This document shows, in pieces, positions 7,011-46,201 of a stretch of DNA of 64,000 nt. Source of the stretch: Ruditapes philippinarum (Eukaryota); contig NW_026860350.1 in the NCBI RefSeq assembly GCF_026571515.1, positions 124,001 to 188,000 of the forward strand. Direction: 5' to 3'. Every line of letters starts with the position of its first letter. Position 1 is the stretch's first letter. The notes below the pieces were generated by a model that did no database searches, had not been told where the DNA came from, and saw nothing but the letters and a program-made list of their open reading frames with translations. Both the position numbers and the translations under genes were made by a program.

Positions 7011-9027
7011 GTCTGTAAATGAGAGATTAAAATACCAGACTTAGTTTTATTAAGTCTGTAAATGAGAGGTGAAAAAACCAGAGTCAGTTTTATCGAGACT
7101 GTAAATGAGAGGTGAAAATACCAAAATTAGTTTTATTGAGTCCGTAAATGAGAGGTGAAAATACCAGAGTCAGTTTTATCAAGTGTAAATGAGAGGTGAA
7201 AATACCAGAATCAGTTTTATTGAGTCCGTAAATGAGACTCTGGAGAAAATACCAGAATCAGTTTTATAGAGTCTGTAAATGAGAGGTGAAAATACCAGAA
7301 TCAGTTTTATTGAGTCTGTAAATGAGACTCTGAGGTGAAAATACCAGAATCAGTTTTATAGAGTCTGTAATTGAGAGATGAAAATACCAGAATCAGTTTT
7401 ATTGAGTCCATAAATGAGAGGTGAAAATACCAGAATCAGTTTTTAGCTCGACTTTTCTATGAAAAGGGGAGCTATCCTACTCGCCCCGGCGTCGGCGTCG
7501 GCGTTAGCGTTAGCGTTAGCGTTGGCGTCACACCTTGGTTAAGTTTTTCGTACCACCCCACTTTATTTCAGAAGTATTACAAGTATGGCTTTGAAACTTA
7601 CCATACTTGTTCACCATCATAACCTCCATCTACAGACAAGAGTACATAACTCTGTCAAGGTTTTTGACAGAATTATGGCCCTTTTTTGACTTAGAAAGTG
7701 TATTGAGCTTGGTTAAGTTTTTTGTACCACCTCACTTTATTTCAAAACCATTGGAGGTATTGCTTTGAAACTGACCATACTTGTTTACCATCACGACCTT
7801 CATCAACAGACAAGAGGACATAACTCTGTCAAGGTTTTTGACAGAATTATGCCCCTTTTTGACTTAGAAAATACATTGAATATGGGTAAAATCCACTTAT
7901 TGCCTTAACCCTTTGAGATATTGCTTTGAAACTTTTAATGCTATTTCACATCATTACCCCCATCTGTACGCAAGAGAAGGTAACTCTGTCAAGGATTTGT
8001 TTTAAAAATTAAGGCCTTTCATCGACTTAGAATCTTGGTTAAGTTTTTAGTACCAGTCCACTTTTTGACTGAACTGTTTGAGATATTAATTTGAAAGTTG
8101 GAATACTTGTTTACAATCATGATTCCCAAACATGGGCAGGAGAAGGTAATTCTGTTAAGGATTTTATTTGAATTATGGCCCTTTTTGACTTAGAAACTCA
8201 GTTAAGATTTTCATTCTTGTCCACTTGTTGACTTAACCATTTGAGATATTACTTTGGAAGTTGGAGTTCTTATGTGCCATCATGAGACCTATCTGTAAGC
8301 AAGAGAAGATAACTCTGTGAAAATGTTTCTTGATTTGTACTTAGAAATTCCTAGTTAAAGTCTTGTGTGCCCTTAACTGTCAAAGTTTTGTTTTATAGGC
8401 AAGCACTAAAAAAGTCGAGCGCGCTGTCCTTCTGACAGCTCTTGTATAGAGTCTGTAAATGAGAGATGAAAATACCAGAATCAGTTTTATTGAGTCCTTG
8501 AATGAGAGGTGAAAATACCAGAATCAGTTTTATAGTCTGTAAATGAGAGATGAAAATACCAGAATCAGTTTTATTGAGTCCATAAAAATGAGAGGTGAAA
8601 ATACCAGAATCAGTTTTATAGAGTCTGTAATTGAGAGATGAAAATACCAGAATCAGTTTTATTGAGTCCATAAATGAGAGGTGAAAATACCAGAATCAGT
8701 TTTATAGAGTCTGTAAATGAGAGATGAAAATACCAGAATCAGTTTTATTGAGTCCATAAATGAGAGGTGAAAATACCAGAATCAGTTTTATAGTCTGTAA
8801 ATGAGAGGTGAAAATACCAGAATCAGTTTTATTGAGTCCATAAAAATGAGAGGTGAAAATACCAGAATCAGTTTTATAGAGTCTGTAAATGAGAGGTGAA
8901 AATACCAGAATCAGTTTTATAGAGTCTGTAAATGAGAGATGAAAATACCAGAATCAGTTTTATTGAGTCCATAAATGAGAGGTGAAAATACCAGAATCAG
9001 TTTTATAGAGTCTGTAAATGAGAGGTA
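7011..9027. repeat. 43-bp minisatellite (AATACCAGAATCAGTTTTATTGAGTCCATAAATGAGAGGTGAA) split by a 1-kb insertion
   Basis: Tandem units at 7011-7440 and 8446-9027, in the same register across the insert. Confidence 0.95.
7441..8445 (+). mobile_element. Non-autonomous Helentron-like element (HINE / pearl-CvA-type architecture)
   Basis: 5' subterminal gctcgactttt matched by 3' aaaagtcgagc; (GGCGTC/AGCGTT)n microsatellite; about five 160-170 bp internal repeats; 3' hairpin gctgtc-cttct-gacagc; inserted in a T run. Confidence 0.85.
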
Positions 9028-36911: not shown

Positions 36912-36993
36912 ATAAAGATGTTGAGTGACAAGATAAATGGTAAACCACGAGGTTATGCTTTCATAGAGTATGAACATGAGAGGGACATGCACT
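36912..36993 (+). CDS. SNRNP70: U1-70K RRM exon with RNP1 ([27 protein letters not shown])
   Basis: tttcag acceptor and T|gtaagt donor; phase 0/1. RNP1 motif RGYAFIEY; equivalent to human exon 7. Confidence 0.98.
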
Positions 36994-37144
36994 GTAAGTA
37001 TATATATCATCATACTGTACTGTTCTCTCACTGGCAGTACGGATGTTTCTTATATGGTTCTTTATGGTTACTATCCTTACAGAGGGATATTTCCTTTTCT
37101 TTTTTAAAAAAAAACGTCATTACTATATTAGATTGTCAATAAGA

Positions 37145-37280
37145 TTTTATATGATTATGATAATAATGATGATAATAATGATAATAATAATAAGATTTTT
37201 ACGATGATAATCATAATAATCCATAATGATAATGATAATAGTAATAGTAATGATAATAATGATGATGATGGTAATATAAT
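37145..37280. repeat. (AAT/GAT)n microsatellite
   Basis: Trinucleotide low-complexity run. Confidence 0.85.
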
Positions 37281-40200
37281 GGAGCGATATATTTGTAAAA
37301 CAAATTCAATAAAAACTCAATAGTCAATAAACTTATTTTTTGCCTGAGTATAAAAAAAGTCATCACCATTATAAAGAGTAATTCATTTAACAGATCATAA
37401 ATTATTTTTGCTAAAATATGTTTTAAAATAACTATGACATGGTAAAATTTAGTATCATAAAAATTAACTGAATGTTCTTTAAATAAAGTGATAGCTGAAG
37501 ATTCAAAATATGAGCTATTATTTTCAACCAGTAAATGTAAAATATGAACCAAGCGCTAGGTGAATGTGAGTATAAAAGTTGATAAGTGAACAAATTTTAA
37601 CTTAAATTAAACTTACTTCATTGAAATCTAGATAGAGATAAATGTAAAGTAAACTTAAAATAAGTTGAATAGTTATTAGTGTTATTGTAGCTATAAATTA
37701 GTTTTTTTTAAATAATTAGCAAAGAATGTAAGTGAAAGTGTCAAGTTTGAAACTAGTTTTATCTGGTATAATGTTATTGTCAGACTTGTACATTATGTTA
37801 TGTTGGCAAGGTTTTGACAGTAATTGTTGCTCAGGTGAACATTCTGTATAAACAATTGTCTCTTCTTTTCCACTTACAAACTATTGAAAATATGTGTAAT
37901 GACGCATGTAGTAAAGAAAACCTTTGAAATGAAAAAAAAACCTACCACCCTTCCTGAAAAACATTTCCAAGAATCATCAGAGTAGTAAATAAAATAAGGA
38001 AATGGAAGTATAATTAACAATTGTAAACACATGGAGAAACATTTTATATAACAAACATTCGTCATTGTGTACTGATTTATGAAAGTACATCATAACTAGC
38101 AGTGGGATAATGGATAGGATATCTCCTCTTTTACACCTGGACTGAGGTCATGGCCATGTTCTCTTAAGTATACAAATTATAAAAATCATAGTAATGACTA
38201 TATTTAGTAAGTTTAACCAAGAAATTTTATCTTTTCATTATTGAAATTGACACATTAAAAAAGTGGGAATTGTCAGAAATCAGCAGTAAAGCATAACTGG
38301 CAATTAAGTTAAGTAACTAGACATGGAATGGCAGTTAATTAGTGTTATATTTGTTACTGGTAGACTACTAATGATAACATAATGTTACATTGTCTGATGT
38401 ACTAAACTAGAATATTTGTAATGGAGACATGCACTCATAATTTGTATGGAATTCTTTTGTAATAATTGGAATTGTTATGAATAGAAAGCAAATCTGGTAT
38501 TCAGCACTCAAATGCACTGTATAGAATAAAACAGAGAAGTTATGACATGTTAGTCCAAATTCTGTATGATTTTGTTAATGCTGTGGTAGCTTTTGTACTT
38601 TAAAAGTAAATCTAAAATAATCTCCAAATCACAAGTACTCTTGGTGTTCTTGGAATTACAGCCAGACATGTGTTTTTTCTAAAGGCATTTGCACTATACA
38701 GCTGAACAGATTTGATTAAGTTTTTTCATACTTTCTGCCTTCTTCCATGATCAAATTGGTATTGCCCAATTTATTTATAAATTTTATTAGTGGCAAGGTT
38801 AACTCTATATTCTGTGTACAGGATATGGTATAAAGGAGCATCACTATGAAGTTGGCAACACTACACTCTAAAAGAATTTGTGCAATTACTTCAAAAACTT
38901 AAGATAATTAATTTAAGCAGTCGTGCATCTGTAAAACTAATGAGAAAGTTCTGAGAACAATTCTATGATACTTCTATAGTTACATATCTTTGTTGACCTT
39001 TATCTCCCAAAGTTGATTTCCTGTATAATGATATATATGTACATGCAGTAATAATGGTCTCTGTTTCAATAATTTAGTATGAAACATTACTCTAAAAAAA
39101 TTTAAAAAGTAAAGATTTCTCTAAGGTGGTCTGTAGATCTACATGTCTGTTTTTCTAAAAAAAAATCTTTACAGGTGTTTGATTATTTCTGAACCTTGTC
39201 AATTTTAGTACATTATTTTTAATTGTTCACCGAATCACAAAAACAGAAATCATGCTCCAAATCAAAGAATGTTCTGGAAAATGTTTGGAGCAATGGAACC
39301 AGTCTAAAAGAGGTGGTCTAGAATGGCAAATATTTGACTGGTTATGTTTTCAAGCAAAGCTTTATTATTAAAGCTGTAAAGGATTTTGTTACTGGGCTTG
39401 CTTGAGCTTCTTTACAGTTAAAAGACATGGTGCCCTGACCATTATCATTATTAACTGAATAAGCTTTGTTTTAAAATGATATTTTATAATAAAATTAAAA
39501 TGATATTTTATAACGAAATTTACAGATAAAATTTATCGGTTGTTTGGTATCTTTATAAAATCTTCATTTGAAATTGAAATTTTTATAAAATTAAGGTTTA
39601 TTGAAGAAATACTAATTGTAAATAGTGAAGACCCCTTAATTGTCTATTTAAACTGTTTTGATTAATATAGCAATAAAATAACATTTTAATGTTTTACACT
39701 ACTTGAGTTAATATACCTCCATCTATTATAAAACTCTTTAAGATTTAGTTTTACCTGTATATATCTGCTAAATTGTTACCTATAATGGAATGATGTACCA
39801 GTACATAATAGGTGGTCTTATGTTCAGATTCTAGGGTGGTTGGTCATCATGTATTGGTCAGTATTTTGGATATTTTAACAACAACACAAGGTTGACTTGT
39901 CTACATTTTTGGCCTGTAAAAATCAAGGTGACAATTGATTTTGAGAAGAAATCATTATAAAGATTTGCTCAATTAGTATTAAGCTCTTTTTTAACAGCAA
40001 GAATGGGCAAGTTGACACTTGGTCTCAAATTCATGGTGGGTTCACAGAGCAAAATGTTAAATTAAATGTTGTCCTAAAACTAAAGGTTAGTTATAGGTTG
40101 GTTTGATCTGGACCTGGTAAATTTTTAAAGTTGATGTTACAAATTTCTTAACTATCAGAGATTACCATAATGGTGCTTTTGCTGACTATATCAATTAAAT

Positions 40201-41373
40201 TGAAATTGATGCTGTGTGTAAATTGTATTTATGTCAATTTGAAAAGATAAAAAACAACACACACAACTAAATGTTTCTCCTAAATGCCTTTATGCTGTTG
40301 CCTTTCTTCATTTTAATGTTTTCTTAAATGCAGCACAATTTAAGATATTTGTTTTATAGGGCGTTGTTACTGCCTAACTGTTTAATTTTATTGTAGTACC
40401 TACTGAGCTCTGACTGAAGTCTTGGCTCCAGATGAGCTTTGTTCATTCTTTCATTTATCAGATGGTGAAAAAAATAGAGAGAGAAAAAAGCAAGAACATA
40501 GTTCCTGTATCCAAAAAGTGTAACATAAAAAATAAACTGAGGAGATAAAAAAAAATTGGGGGAAATGTTAAAAAAATGGTTTTGATAAGGTTTTTTTTCT
40601 CATTGGATTTACTACTTACATTTTTTATAATTCAACAGTTAAGGTAAAATGCTTCAAACCGTATAAATTTAGTTTGTTATCGTATAAATAAGTTAAAATA
40701 GTATATAACAATATCTAAATTGGTCATAATAATTTAGCTGTGCCATCTAAATTAGTCTCAATTAGTGATAAATAATCTAGATCCTTGTCTTATTCTGGTG
40801 AGTTTTTCAAAAAATTATTGTAAAAAGACAATAGTTTAGCTGAAAGCAAAATTGTCAGACAAGACTGGTGGGCACATTCTGTACAGTGTGACAAGGCATT
40901 ATACTGTTGTCTATAGTTCTTGGTTTGGTCATTGTACTTAACCTACACCCTGCTGGGAGTGACTGATTCTACCTATGTGACCAGTGCAGACCATGGTCAG
41001 ACGGTACGGTACATACATGCTGTCTGATAATGGTCTGTACTGTTACATGTTCAATCAATACATATCTTGATATTTTCCCCTAAAGATTATAGAAACATTT
41101 TATGAAAATGTTCTTAGAATAAAAATATTTTAAGGCTGAAAATATTATATAGATGATAAATTTTGAAATTTTTAGCTAGAAACTTTAAAAAAATTTTTTT
41201 TTTTACTGGACACCTGAAATGGATGAATTTGAAATGTAATAGTCTTGCATAACTTATTTACTGTCCTATCGGAAAGAATAACATACTTTAACTTCAGTTT
41301 TAAGTATGAGGTTTGAAATGTATTCAGTGTCATGATGTGTGTTGTATTTAAAGAAATATAAAGTGTTACATAC

Positions 41374-41430
41374 CTGCTGGTCAGAATGAGTATGCTGGGA
41401 ACACGAAGCAAACTCCACCTCAAACATCAT
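41374..41430 (-). CDS. Candidate alternative first coding exon (MMFEVEFASCSQHTHSDQQ)
   Basis: 19 codons to a strong CAG|gtatgt donor, phase 0; GC content above flanks. Confidence 0.5.
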
Positions 41431-42189
41431 GTGATATAATTCCGAAATATGTTTTTATTATTGAAGTATTCTATATTCCATGTGTATAAACAATTAACAG
41501 GGTGTTTTGTAAATGTTATGGATACACTAGCTAACTCATGTAACCATCTCTACCTGCTGAATGTAATAAAATGCCCTCCTGAAAGACATGTTTTCAAACA
41601 CTTGTTTCATAATTACAATAAATTATGATGGTGAACTTGCACAGAGTACACCATTTTGAATCAGTTGCTATCCAAAAAAACATTGTTTGATCTTGTAAAG
41701 AAATATGAATAATTGACTTGGTGTTTGGTTAACTAAATCCTTCAGCAAGATAAAGGTAAAGAATGTTTTTCCTTCACACCTTTTTAATATGAATGAAGTT
41801 GTCAAGTTTCCATATGTTTATTATTTTGTTTACTCAGTGTAGAGAATTTTTTACTTGCAATCAAATGGAAAGCCTGAGAGTGCAGCCAAAACAGATACCG
41901 ATACTGGGGGGTTTTACATGTTTTTTTTTTCTTGTAGGAAATGCTGTTTAGCTCTTGTGATGTTAATGAGAGGGTTAGAATAGTTTTTATTATCAATCAA
42001 GGTATTTAGCTCTACTCTAGATGAAGTATTTACATTACAACATGTAATTATATCATTAAACCTCGGAAATAACCTTCTGTTCTAATTATACATTTCTTCT
42101 ACAAGAACTGATTAATGGTGGTTTTTGCTGCCAGACCTTGTAACAAGATAAAAACTAAATTGTTGCAATTTTGGTATGTCCTCATCTCT

Positions 42190-42345
42190 TATTGATTATC
42201 TCCCCATTTCTGATAATTTTCCCCATTCTAATGATTATCTCCCCATTTCTTATGATTACCCCCTTCTAATGATTATCTCCTCATTTCTTATGATATCCCC
42301 CTTCTAATGATTATCTCCTCCTTTCTGATGATTTCCCCCTTCTAA
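42190..42345. repeat. Degenerate ~20-bp tandem repeat (GATTATCTCCCCATTTCT)
   Basis: 7-8 imperfect copies. Confidence 0.7.
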
Positions 42346-44090
42346 TTAATGGTTAACTAGTGTCTTGTAATTTCTGTAAAAATGATATGTTGAATTTCAA
42401 TGTTATCCATTGCACAATTTATTAAGATCCATTAATTATCCCCCTTTTTTGGTTATCTCCCTATCTCACACTGTGCTGGTCTAGAATTACTTCCCTTTGT
42501 AAAAGTGATAAAAGTATCCAAAAGCAATGGCTTTGTGCTTCATCTCCTTTTATAAAACAAACATTTCTGTTAATCATTGTTAACTCATGTTTATTTGCAA
42601 GTATGTTTGTAATGGTATACCTGGAGATGGGATGAAAATAACTGAAAATGTTCCTAAAGTATCTGTATGATAAATCAAAATGTTGGACATTTGAAATTCC
42701 TGTGTTGATGATTTCTTGTGTTATTTCCTCTCTACTATATTATGAAACTGACATTAGTTAAGTGTATAATAATAATGGGTGGGTGAAATAGTGGGTGGGT
42801 GAATGGATTGAATCACTATAACATCATTAAAAATAAACAATAAAATAGAAATATATAGATGTATGATGCAGTGTATTAGCCATGTCTGGTAGATGTGTAA
42901 ACAACATCAGGATAACTTCTAACTTCTATAACATACTGTAAATTGGTTGCTTGGATGCGTTGAGGTAATTTGAATAAATAATGAGGAAAACAATAATTTA
43001 CGTATTTATTAGATTGTATCAGGTTTACCACATATTACTTTAGAGACTGAGGGGAAATAATGGATAAAAGTACATAGATATAATCTAGTTTACCTGCCAG
43101 AAACTGTAATTCCCAATATTAATGATACATGAAATTATATTATAAAAGATTATCACAAAAAATGAGTATTAATTAATACATAGAATTTCCATTTAAGAAA
43201 AAACAAAAAATCCCTTTAAGCTTAGTGATAAACAAGTATACAAGAGATTTGTCTTGCTATTGAATTTAATGTTTTACTCTTAGCCAGCTGAATGTTTAAT
43301 ACTGGATTGTCATGTTTTAAACTGGCTATATTTAATATGTAATGAATTTTCCTAGCTTCTAATTAAGAACTGTCTGTTAGCAATTGTGAGGACATTAAAG
43401 AACCAGTATATATAGAGCCTGGTCAAAATTGTATGGAATTTGCTGACTAGCCTGGCTCTATACTGATGACAAATGTTAATTACTTAGTACCAGTTCCAGC
43501 AGGGTTAAGGAAATTTCACTTTCAAATTTCAAATAATTACGTATTAAACAGCCATCAATATTATGTCTGGTCACACTAGACAGGTTTTCTTGCATGTCTG
43601 ACTTCATTATTAAGCCATAGGCAGTTCAAATATTATATTGCCAAAGGGAAATACCAGCTATTGTAGAAGTTTAGAAAGTTATGAAGCAATAACTGATCTG
43701 TTATTTTAACAATGCTGAAATGTATTAATAAAATAATAAAATACTTGAAATCATTAAAGAGAAATTAAACTTGAAATTATAAAGAGAAACTAACATTATA
43801 CCCTGTAGAAATACAAACTGTGATGATTTAAAATTATGATTTTTTTTTCCCTTCAAATTTTGATTTAAAATTTTAATATAATAGCTAGAAACAATAAATG
43901 AAAACAGATTTCTTGGAAATAATAACTTTCAAAGATGTATTTAAAAACTTTATAAAATTTATAACTCAATGGTTGATTATTTATTAATTATAAATTGTTA
44001 ATATTTGTACAAGTTAACATTTTTGTTTATTTTGAATTAAAATATTTGTTGAACTAGTCATGATTTTGTGCATGCATTATTATTGTTCAG

Positions 44091-44573
44091 ATATGAAATG
44101 ATTAATTCAGGATATTAAAAGTAAATTAAAACACATATACTTTGTTACGTCTTTATGTATATGAAAATTCTGTGATGAACTAATTTGATGTTTTTGAATG
44201 CATACATATCCCTTACTTTGTTACCTTTATAGTTATGAATATTAGTTACTGACGGTGTAATGCACAGGTAAATGAAGCAAAAATAAGGAGTGGTAAGTCC
44301 TAAAATGTGTCCTTCATCTTTTTCATCCAAAAACAAACAAAAAACAATAATCTTGGAATCTATGGTAAGAAATATGGTTAAAGGTTTTATTGGGGGGATG
44401 GGAATTAATGTTTGTTAAGTTAAATTTTGGTTTAATCAAGCTGGTAAGTGTTTTTAAACAATGTTGTAAATTTTTGGTAAGTAAAGAAGAAAAAAACAAA
44501 TTTTATGTTAGGGATGTTTTAAGTAAAGGGAAATATGGAATTGGTAAGTTTTGGGGAATAAATTTGGTAAGTG
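44091..44573 (+). promoter_or_regulatory. Putative poison exon plus cluster of U1-binding 5' splice sites in the SNRNP70 intron
   Basis: Acceptors ttgttcag|44091 and aattcag|44111. GT donors at 44268 (CAG|gtaaat), 44365 (ATG|gtaaga) and TG|gtaagt at 44293, 44444, 44477, 44544 and 44567. Confidence 0.65.
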
Positions 44574-46099
44574 CATTAAGTAAAATTGAAACTGTTTAAT
44601 TTAGAATGATTTAGAACCGGACTAATATTTCTATTATTATTTTTGCTTCAGAGTGCAAAATGAAGGTCCGCCATTCAGTAACGAATTTGTCCCGATTTTC
44701 TGCTCAAAATATATCACAAGAATTAGGGTTTGTATACCAGTGGTAAGCTTGGGGATTTAAACAGTTAAATAAAAATCAGTCAGTTAAAACAAGTTATAAA
44801 ACAAACATTCGATATAAGTAAAATTTAAAAAGATTATCGCTTAAAACGTACATGTTAAAGTATTATTTTAATCGAACATCATACCGTGTAAGGGGTATGA
44901 CACAAAAATCTTAAATCTTTCTGATATTTTAAGGTTTTCAAACTATTGGGGGGAAAGTAAAATAAAATTTACATATTAAAAACAAAATCAGGTAAGCTGG
45001 GTTGATCCGTTGTGGATCTTTATCGACGACCCATGCTGCAATGGAAATATAAACCCCCGAGAGCAGTGCTCTAGAGCAATGTTATTTGCTATCTGAATGA
45101 TGGAAAATGTTCCATGTTTTAAGGAAACCGTTGGGTAGGTTAAGGTGTAAGTTTTTCTTTTGTTATGTATTATTGATGTTATCTTTCTTTGATACATAGC
45201 ACAGAAGATTCATTCTGTACAAAAACCCCTTAAATATATAATAAAAAGATTTATTTTAACTAACCCTCCTGTTTTAAAATAAATCACCAAACACACTTCA
45301 AAAAAAGCAAAAATTTCAGCAGATGTGAATTTTGGGACACTTTTGAATTGTTTACACTCTAGAAAAATTAATATTTAAAAGCTTTTCTTTTTTTCAGGGT
45401 AAGTATTGAGAAATCCTTGATATTGTTTCTATGGAAACGAAAATTTGATAATCAAGGATTGTCTCAAATCATGTATTTAGTTTCTATGACAGTTGTTATG
45501 GAATTTTACAGTTGATGATTTTCAGGCACAGTTTTCAAGAATTGTTTCAATTTTAAATTTTATTTTATAATGTTGAGTAAAACCTGTATACCATAAAATC
45601 TTGCACAAATTAATTGCCAAATTAAAGTACTAAGTGATTAATTTTAGGGCTTTTGGTTTCTTGATGCTACTTTTAATAAAACAAAAATCACATTTTTGTA
45701 AAGTGGCCATGTATTTGGAGTATTTTATTTTAGGCTTGACATATTACAGGTTTTACTTCTTTATTTGCACATTTAGGAAATTTCTTTTATTTCCAATGTT
45801 TAATGACTTTTAGGAGCATCACTGACATTTGGATTAAATTATTGAGGAGTGATTTGGAAAACAGAATACAACTCATTTTTACTTTGATTGTAATTCAGGA
45901 AAATGAAAATTTAATAGGTAATTTTGGCACTTTAGAAATATATCCTCCATTATCACAGCATAATGGTAATACATGCTTTGATAATGTGACTGTGGGTTTA
46001 ATACAACTTGGCTGTTATAGATGTTATTGATGTTGAGGTAATAGAGGCATAAATTGAACACCATATAAAACTTGACTATTTTCCCTCCCCTGTATCTAG

Positions 46100-46201
46100 C
46101 GGCATATAAACATGCTGATGGTAAGAAGATTGATGGTCGTAGGGTGTTGGTAGATGTCGAGAGAGGGCGCACCGTCAAGGGGTGGCGACCAAGAAGATTG
46201 G
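46100..46201 (+). CDS. SNRNP70: U1-70K exon ([35 protein letters not shown])
   Basis: Pyrimidine-rich ctag acceptor and G|gtaagc donor; 102 nt, phase 1/1. Hallmark U1-70K sequence. Confidence 0.98.

Follow-up and report, generated by a model that had tools for sequence, protein, structure and literature searches.

The window analyzed here, a 64,000-nt stretch of Ruditapes philippinarum DNA (contig NW_026860350.1, positions 124,001 to 188,000 of the forward strand; positions below count from its first letter), carries on its + strand SNRNP70, the gene for U1-70K of U1 snRNP (small nuclear ribonucleoprotein), and intron 36994-46099 of this gene probably contains an orthologue of the unproductive-splicing module known in vertebrates as exon 7a. 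A sequence-only reading of the window had proposed a U1-sensing SNRNP70 switch within 44081-44600, in which an array of U1-type 5′ splice sites stood behind an acceptor that introduces a premature stop codon. The proposal held as to a conserved unproductive-splicing module, but not as to its anatomy: the homologous switch would be 44628-44750, immediately 3′ of the reported interval, and the array lies upstream of the conserved acceptor at 44651|44652 (vertical bars mark exon boundaries), not behind it.

The vertebrate switch is the "exon 7a" of SNRNP70 intron 7 (Rosel-Hillgartner et al. 2013, PMC3798272), and Parra et al. (2020, PMC7373989) described an SNRNP70 decoy exon of 60/72 nt, with a morpholino that marks the exon|intron boundary AAGG|GTTT. 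The morpholinos of PMC3798272 are directed against human cryptic sites A/B and B/C (reverse complements GTGTATGGTTGGTATAAGGGTTTGT and AAGGGTTTGTATCATGGGTAAGATC), and human sequence was used here only as printed in the morpholino lists of these two papers. Published conservation of the element extends among vertebrates (PMC3798272) and from fish to mammals (PMC7373989), with human and mouse described elsewhere in the literature searched, which contained no report of an SNRNP70 exon-7a element outside vertebrates.

The window agrees with the vertebrate exon-7a system in gene, intron position, phase, and the premature stop on inclusion. The SNRNP70 exons are bivalve-like, with 86-89% identity to scallop and pearl-oyster proteins as best protein matches, in line with the gene assignment of the sequence-only reading. 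The intron interrupts the RRM after ...EYEHERDMH in phase 1, the position of the exon-7a module. Relatives were gathered by searching a 33-residue exon singly, by using a full-length relative to list orthologues (the named mollusc SNRNP70 orthologues were from Mactra, Mya, Pecten, Crassostrea, Haliotis, and others), and by scanning metagenome contigs with the Mactra protein. An exon end at HERDMH plus one base was found in the window and in ~60 of 80 metagenome loci, and in the genomic ones an intron of the same phase comes next. Both flanking exons were present in 23 loci, or 18 after near-identical contigs were merged, giving 19 introns with that of the window. By their best matches, the contigs were insect-, arachnid-, crustacean-like, annelid-/nemertean-like or unassignable, with one (L084) fish-like.

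A short block inside this intron was shared across these loci. The pattern AGGTTTGTAT-N(2-10)-GGTAAG was found in the same intron of 11 loci (L041, L043, L044, L045, L049, L052, L062, L063, L065, L069, and L073), and nhmmer extended the block to L033, L040, L054-L057, L067, and the window, for a total of about 20 intron-bearing loci (about 16 with near-identical contigs merged) plus the window. The window has the AGGGTTTGTAT form and reads TAGGGTTTGTAT ACCAGT GGTAAGC. In alignments of 12 (A2) and 10 (A3) sequences, GGTTTGTAT and GGTAA(G) were the sole invariant runs. Genome-wide (1.4 Gb), the AGGTTTGTAT-form pattern occurred 7 times versus 11 times in a reversed control, so that a sense match in one given 9-kb intron is not expected by chance. 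The fish-like L084 carries GGGTTTGTATGATGGGTAAGAT about 1 kb into the same intron after HERDMH. Against the human sites, position 44727|44728 of the window corresponds to the weak donor B and 44742|44743 to the strong donor C. The sequence-only reading had left deep conservation and convergence side by side; the invariant GGTTTGTAT-spacer-GGTAAG block, common to arthropod-like contigs, the fish-like contig, and the human morpholino targets, argues for homology of the switch.

The acceptor and its spacing were conserved along with the block. A polypyrimidine tract followed by AG aligns 54-95 nt before site B in the window and in L062, L063, L065, L069, L043, L073, L056, and L033. The 44651 acceptor aligns with ...TGCTGCAG|AG of L062, L063, and L065, as well as with the acceptors of L069, L043, and L073; the window reads TTTTTGCTTCAG|AG, versus TTTTTGCTGCAG|AC, TTTATGCTGCAG|AG, and TTGTTGCTGCAG|AG in relatives. 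The distance from acceptor to site B was 74-86 nt in the window, L069, L062, L063, L065, L044, L049, L057, and L052, with exon lengths to site B of 76 nt in the window, 74 in L069, 79 in L065, 80 in L062 and L063, and 72 in the human major exon. By a crude pyrimidine count over the 104 AGs between 43.8 and 46.1 kb, the acceptor opening exon 44652 ranked 2nd, just after the constitutive 46100 at rank 1. An alternative acceptor 60-90 nt before the donors is thus predicted at 44651|44652, 76 nt before B, and at 44724-44750 a GG|GTAAG stands a few nt after AGG|GTTTGTAT. Joined to the upstream T, the predicted exon begins with AG and yields an instant TAG. The vertebrate exon 7a and its putative counterpart in the window both have an acceptor 72-76 nt before an AGG|GTTTGTAT donor, with GG|GTAAG and then more donors beyond it.

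Several observations touch the surroundings of the block. The 16-mer ATCAGGTAAGCTGGGT, which contains CAG|GTAAGC, was identical in the window (44987-45002), L062 (2753-2768), and L065 (4764-4779), always downstream of the block. The TGCTKCAG|AG acceptor with its instant TAG is likewise common to the window, L062, and L065, so that among the contigs these two may stand nearest to the window. In insect-like L069 (5745-5785), L056 (2833-2870), and L033 (909-945), ACATACAA just after the block is the reverse complement of TTGTATGT in site B, and their pairing predicts a small hairpin with the weak donor paired and the loop holding the strong GGTAAG. A near match occurs in L063 and none in the window.

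Use of the homologous acceptor was seen in an insect relative. Three upstream introns are gone from L040, a spliced transcript contig whose insect source is close to genomic L069, and its HERDMH exon is joined exactly at L069 5675|5676, the aligned acceptor. Past this acceptor, L040 continues through sites B and C and then ~1 kb more, unspliced. Of its four coding segments, three were 96-99% identical to L069 and the first, with the 5′ end of the contig, 81%; within the intron, identity was 86% around exon 7a versus 73% deeper in. The unspliced distal intron matches the vertebrate case, in which the rest of intron 7 remained largely unspliced in HeLa cells after use of the alternative acceptor (PMC3798272). 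The intron was retained in L043 and L033. A further stop-containing product was seen among the relatives: metatranscriptome contig L051 carries a 47-nt cassette (337-383) exactly at the HERDMH|S junction, giving TCA TGA, and is otherwise equal to L026, L027, and L036, the same species' normal mRNA. This cassette lacks the GTTTGTAT block.

The orthologous introns were also rich in U1-type motifs on the sense strand. Across the 19 non-redundant introns (39.2 kb, window included, true donors excluded), we counted 78 sense versus 6 antisense internal GTAAGT (1.99 versus 0.15 per kb; binomial p = 5e-17), with sense exceeding antisense in each locus. The rest of the same loci had 0.27 sense versus 0.22 antisense per kb. 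This ~13-fold sense enrichment argues for selection for multiple U1 sites in the intron. L070/L071, with a 4.3-kb intron that starts GTATGT and has no recognizable block, had 7 sense versus 1 antisense GTAAGT and a perfect CAG|GTAAGTAT 90 nt before the constitutive acceptor; their best matches were at 73-76% to very different animals.

The sense-strand concentration of U1-type 5′ splice sites that drew attention to this intron was confirmed at every position. The five TG|GTAAGT motifs have their GT at 44293, 44444, 44477, 44544, and 44567 (TGGTAAGT copies span 44291-44572), and two weaker sites are CAG|GTAAAT (GT at 44268) and ATG|GTAAGA (GT at 44365). All five + strand copies of the 8-mer TGGTAAGT in the window fall inside the array. 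In 300 dinucleotide-preserving shuffles of the window, a 300-bp span held at most 2 GGTAAGT, versus 5 observed, and a Poisson estimate for the window was about 1e-7. The shuffle mean of 4.3 GGTAAGT per strand per 64 kb agrees with the earlier estimate of one per 15-20 kb. The U1 snRNA (small nuclear RNA) genes of this genome begin ATACTTACCTGG, and each TGGTAAGT can therefore form 7 contiguous base pairs with the U1 5′ end.

The earlier statement that the array is not a simple tandem repeat also stood. A tandem repeat search detected none, direct repeats in the region formed only weak two-copy families (at most 93% identity over 12-31 nt), and region 44000-44700 had one copy in the 1.4-Gb assembly; the array has neither periodic units nor several genomic copies. 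Genome-wide, triple-GGTAAGT clusters gave about 2,300 matches versus about 1,100 in a reversed control and, among the matches listed, were mostly tandem satellites, although the array itself is no satellite. One example is G000:C546:60338-61665, with a 27-nt unit, GGTAAGTATGTCCATGTATACAGTCTT, carrying GGTAAGT. Motif clusters as such are common in the genome because satellite units carry GGTAAGT, and the triple-GGTAAGT pattern was rejected as a genome-wide discriminator, since satellites dominate its matches. The array units aligned locally to the B/C block no better than shuffles did (67/500), and a reading of them as divergent block copies was rejected.

The arrangement suggests a negative feedback on U1-70K. 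By analogy with vertebrate experiments, intact U1 snRNP would bind sites B and C, define exon 7a, and activate its acceptor, and the exon-7a product would be degraded or retained, so that more U1 snRNP would give less U1-70K mRNA. In the window, the strong acceptor 44651|44652 would be followed by B 76 nt and C 91 nt downstream and by more donors at 44992, 45147, and 45399, with a TAG on inclusion. The five TGGTAAGT sites, 80-360 nt upstream of this acceptor, would be an added U1-binding set in the same switch, probably lineage-specific, and their role in it is putative. They could act as donors for extra cryptic exons with acceptor 44233 or 44091; as donors or decoys pairing with the 44651 acceptor over 85-360 nt, a typical short-intron distance; or they could have no function.

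Four points weigh against an orthologous exon 7a with the array as part of it. Of the 35 internal GTAAGT in the 11 other loci that carry the block, 34 lay downstream of it, whereas the array is upstream of the acceptor; the exon-definition logic of the vertebrate switch therefore fails to explain the array directly. L029, L048, L053, L068, and L070 were GTAAGT-enriched with no recognizable block. The taxon labels of the metagenome contigs are approximate and come from best protein matches only. Finally, the use of 44652, of sites B/C, or of the array donors in Ruditapes has the standing of a candidate.

The sequence-only reading placed the poison exon elsewhere, at an acceptor opening 44091 or 44111. 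On a rival model built upon this, with the stronger 44233 as a further choice, the TGGTAAGT array would set the 5′ end of the poison exon and would be, in place of exon 44652, the main U1 sensor in this species. The frames stated in the sequence-only reading were correct: T plus 44091 gives TAT ATG AAA TGA and T plus 44111 gives TGA, both instant premature stops, and the match to U1 is better for the array sites than for sites B and C. Acceptor 44233 has a good polypyrimidine tract; its exon would start 35 nt upstream of the CAG|GTAAAT donor, with the first TGGTAAGT donor 60 nt away, and 44233 may open an additional cryptic exon. The rival model can coexist with the exon-7a reading. However, 44091 and 44111 ranked 24th and 83rd of the 104 AGs, nothing in that stretch aligns with any relative, and the evidence from the conserved acceptor, from the block, and from transcripts points to 44652-44748, which leaves this placement rather doubtful. 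That the array is instead a functionless by-product of local duplication or drift, in an AT-rich intron beside a real conserved element, would account for its absence upstream of the acceptor in every relative examined, for the commonness of GGTAAGT-bearing repeats in the genome, and for a weak direct repeat (D3) that connects two array units. The five perfect 8-mers, set apart by unrelated spacers, greatly exceed chance, though, and the lack of a tandem-repeat signal, the single genomic copy, the absence of significant similarity between array units and the B/C block, and the GTAAGT enrichment in the same intron of every other taxon examined all make a by-product unlikely.

The array may also be coupled to RNA structure. 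A perfect 14-bp inverted repeat (44273-44286 and 44637-44650) encloses it, the 3′ arm being the polypyrimidine tract of the acceptor, and the 14-bp stem appeared in both the minimum-energy and the centroid folds, with a fold z-score of only -1.5. On this model the stem would hide the acceptor until several U1 snRNPs bound in the loop opened it, giving a cooperative threshold read-out; we regard this as a long shot, and if true it would be an arrangement not described for the vertebrate switch. Telescripting, in which intronic U1 suppresses premature cleavage and polyadenylation at AATAAA-like signals and low U1 yields truncated transcripts, fits the AT-rich stretch with AATAAA-type hexamers (e.g., around 44558 and 44768), and a feedback through intronic polyadenylation under U1 control is reported for a different processing factor (PMC3708835). 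Such feedback would nevertheless be positive, with less U1 giving less U1-70K, and hence non-homeostatic, while the conserved acceptor, conserved exon length, and spliced insect transcript fit a splicing switch; telescripting is accordingly very improbable here. Recursive or stepwise splicing that aids removal of a 9.1-kb intron has next to no likelihood: all five array sites are TG|GTAAGT with no upstream tract, and since TG rather than AG precedes them, splicing upstream cannot restore a 5′ splice site there. The AG|GTAAGT after a polypyrimidine tract that such splicing calls for was not found in the array. The neighboring 23-kb intron, moreover, manages with no such array. In its favor, 45385-45406 joins a long polypyrimidine tract and CAG to GTAAGTAT. 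There, a single base separates the CAG from GTAAGTAT (ttttctttttttcagGGTAAGTAT), which sets 3′ and 5′ splice sites almost back to back and resembles a recursive-splicing site with a one-base offset.

The exon-7a module of the window differs from the vertebrate one in several respects. It lies 7.7 kb into a 9.1-kb intron, it has five consensus-strength U1 sites upstream of the acceptor, and human site A (GTTGGT) has no visible counterpart in the window. Dependence on U1C and on nonsense-mediated decay belongs to the vertebrate exon 7a; in the window the link to U1 consists of complementarity to its own U1 5′ end, ATACTTACCTGG. Like the USSE, a splicing enhancer that binds U11 snRNP, the window has tandem 5′ splice-site motifs that would bind the very snRNP containing the gene's own protein, an upstream 3′ splice site that would be activated, an mRNA predicted to be unstable, and conservation over very long distances. 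Unlike the window, the USSE works through the minor spliceosome with U12-type 5′ splice sites and consists of two tightly spaced repeats in a different gene family. In retroviruses, the negative regulator of splicing holds U1 in non-productive complexes by means of decoy 5′ splice sites. A comparable case is the Drosophila P-element IVS3 silencer (PMC4647562), in which U1 occupies 5′ splice sites that go unused, close to a 3′ splice site, and shifts splice-site choice. Both decoys are a possible model for the upstream array, although those elements silence an authentic site in their vicinity and rely on other proteins. The text of Ding et al. (2026, PMC13100119) describes an ultraconserved ENOX1/Enox pseudo-5′ splice site that is likewise a short intronic U1-binding motif, present from invertebrates to vertebrates, and that tunes a neighboring exon. 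As described there, it differs from the window in being a single motif in an unrelated gene, never spliced, that silences an essential coding exon. SNRNP70 is not mentioned in that text, a statement that leaves aside the paper's list of eight genes.

TABLE 1 Features of SNRNP70 and of the putative exon-7a module in the window
Feature	Position	Strand	Sequence or remark
SNRNP70 exon	about 13.55 kb	+	NYDTSESKLRREFEVYGPIRK
Constitutive SNRNP70 exon	36912-36993	+	Ends ...EYEHERDMH, CAC T; last base T is the first of the next codon
Donor of exon 36912-36993	36994	+	T|GTAAGT
Intron orthologous to vertebrate SNRNP70 intron 7	36994-46099	+	9,106 bp
Candidate acceptors of the sequence-only reading	44089-44110	+	Exon starts 44091, 44111; weak polypyrimidine tracts, not conserved
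Unconserved candidate acceptor	44208-44232	+	Exon start 44233; rank 3/104
U1-type 5′ splice-site array	44265-44572	+	Five TG|GTAAGT plus CAG|GTAAAT, ATG|GTAAGA
Conserved alternative 3′ splice site (candidate in this species)	44628-44651	+	Polypyrimidine tract plus AG; TTTCTATTATTATTTTTGCTTCAG|AG
Probable orthologue of vertebrate poison/decoy exon 7a	44652-44742	+	76 nt via donor B, 91 nt via donor C
Invariant block	44724-44750	+	GGTTTGTAT-6 nt-GGTAAG; matches human regulatory 5′ splice sites B and C; nhmmer hit
Weak donor B	44727|44728	+	AGG|GTTTGTAT
Strong donor C	44742|44743	+	GTG|GTAAGC
Second conserved donor	44987-45002	+	ATCAG|GTAAGCTGGGT; 16/16 identity with L062, L065
Further GTAAGT donor, downstream of block	45147	+	
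Further GTAAGT donor, downstream of block	45399	+	AGG|GTAAGTAT
Next constitutive exon	46100-46201	+	(S)AYKHADG...RPRRLG
Two arginine-rich SNRNP70 exons	near 46.5 and 47.0 kb	+	

Elsewhere in the window, GTAAGT was not concentrated in a comparable way in the neighboring SNRNP70 intron (13620-36911, about 23 kb). The N-terminal exons of SNRNP70 were looked for in 1-13.5 kb with a negative result, and their probable location is upstream of the window. An Rfam scan of the entire intron 36994-46099 gave zero matches. Short tandem arrays at 1396-1790 and 8543-8896 were seen as repetitive open frames (LVLLSGCTKF-like units; MRGENTRISFIESIK twice) and are probably intronic or intergenic minisatellites.

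The U1-70K/U1C loop is a known homeostat of the most abundant spliceosomal particle, so far described in vertebrates only. Its core, namely the acceptor spacing and the invariant pair of a weak and a strong donor, is conserved at the nucleotide level in a mollusc, in insect and other invertebrate contigs, and in vertebrates. The feedback element is thus probably older than the split between vertebrates and invertebrates, and the loop would date to before the protostome-deuterostome split. As judged from its sequence, the element in the window would be a further instance of the known switch, with the upstream array as a variant feature, and the five sites would indicate that U1 sites around the core can change in number and position. 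The element would be one of very few intronic regulatory sequences recognizable across the protostome-deuterostome distance; the truly essential sensor could be its invariant weak donor, GTTTGTAT, and tests of the loop in genetically tractable invertebrates would become feasible.

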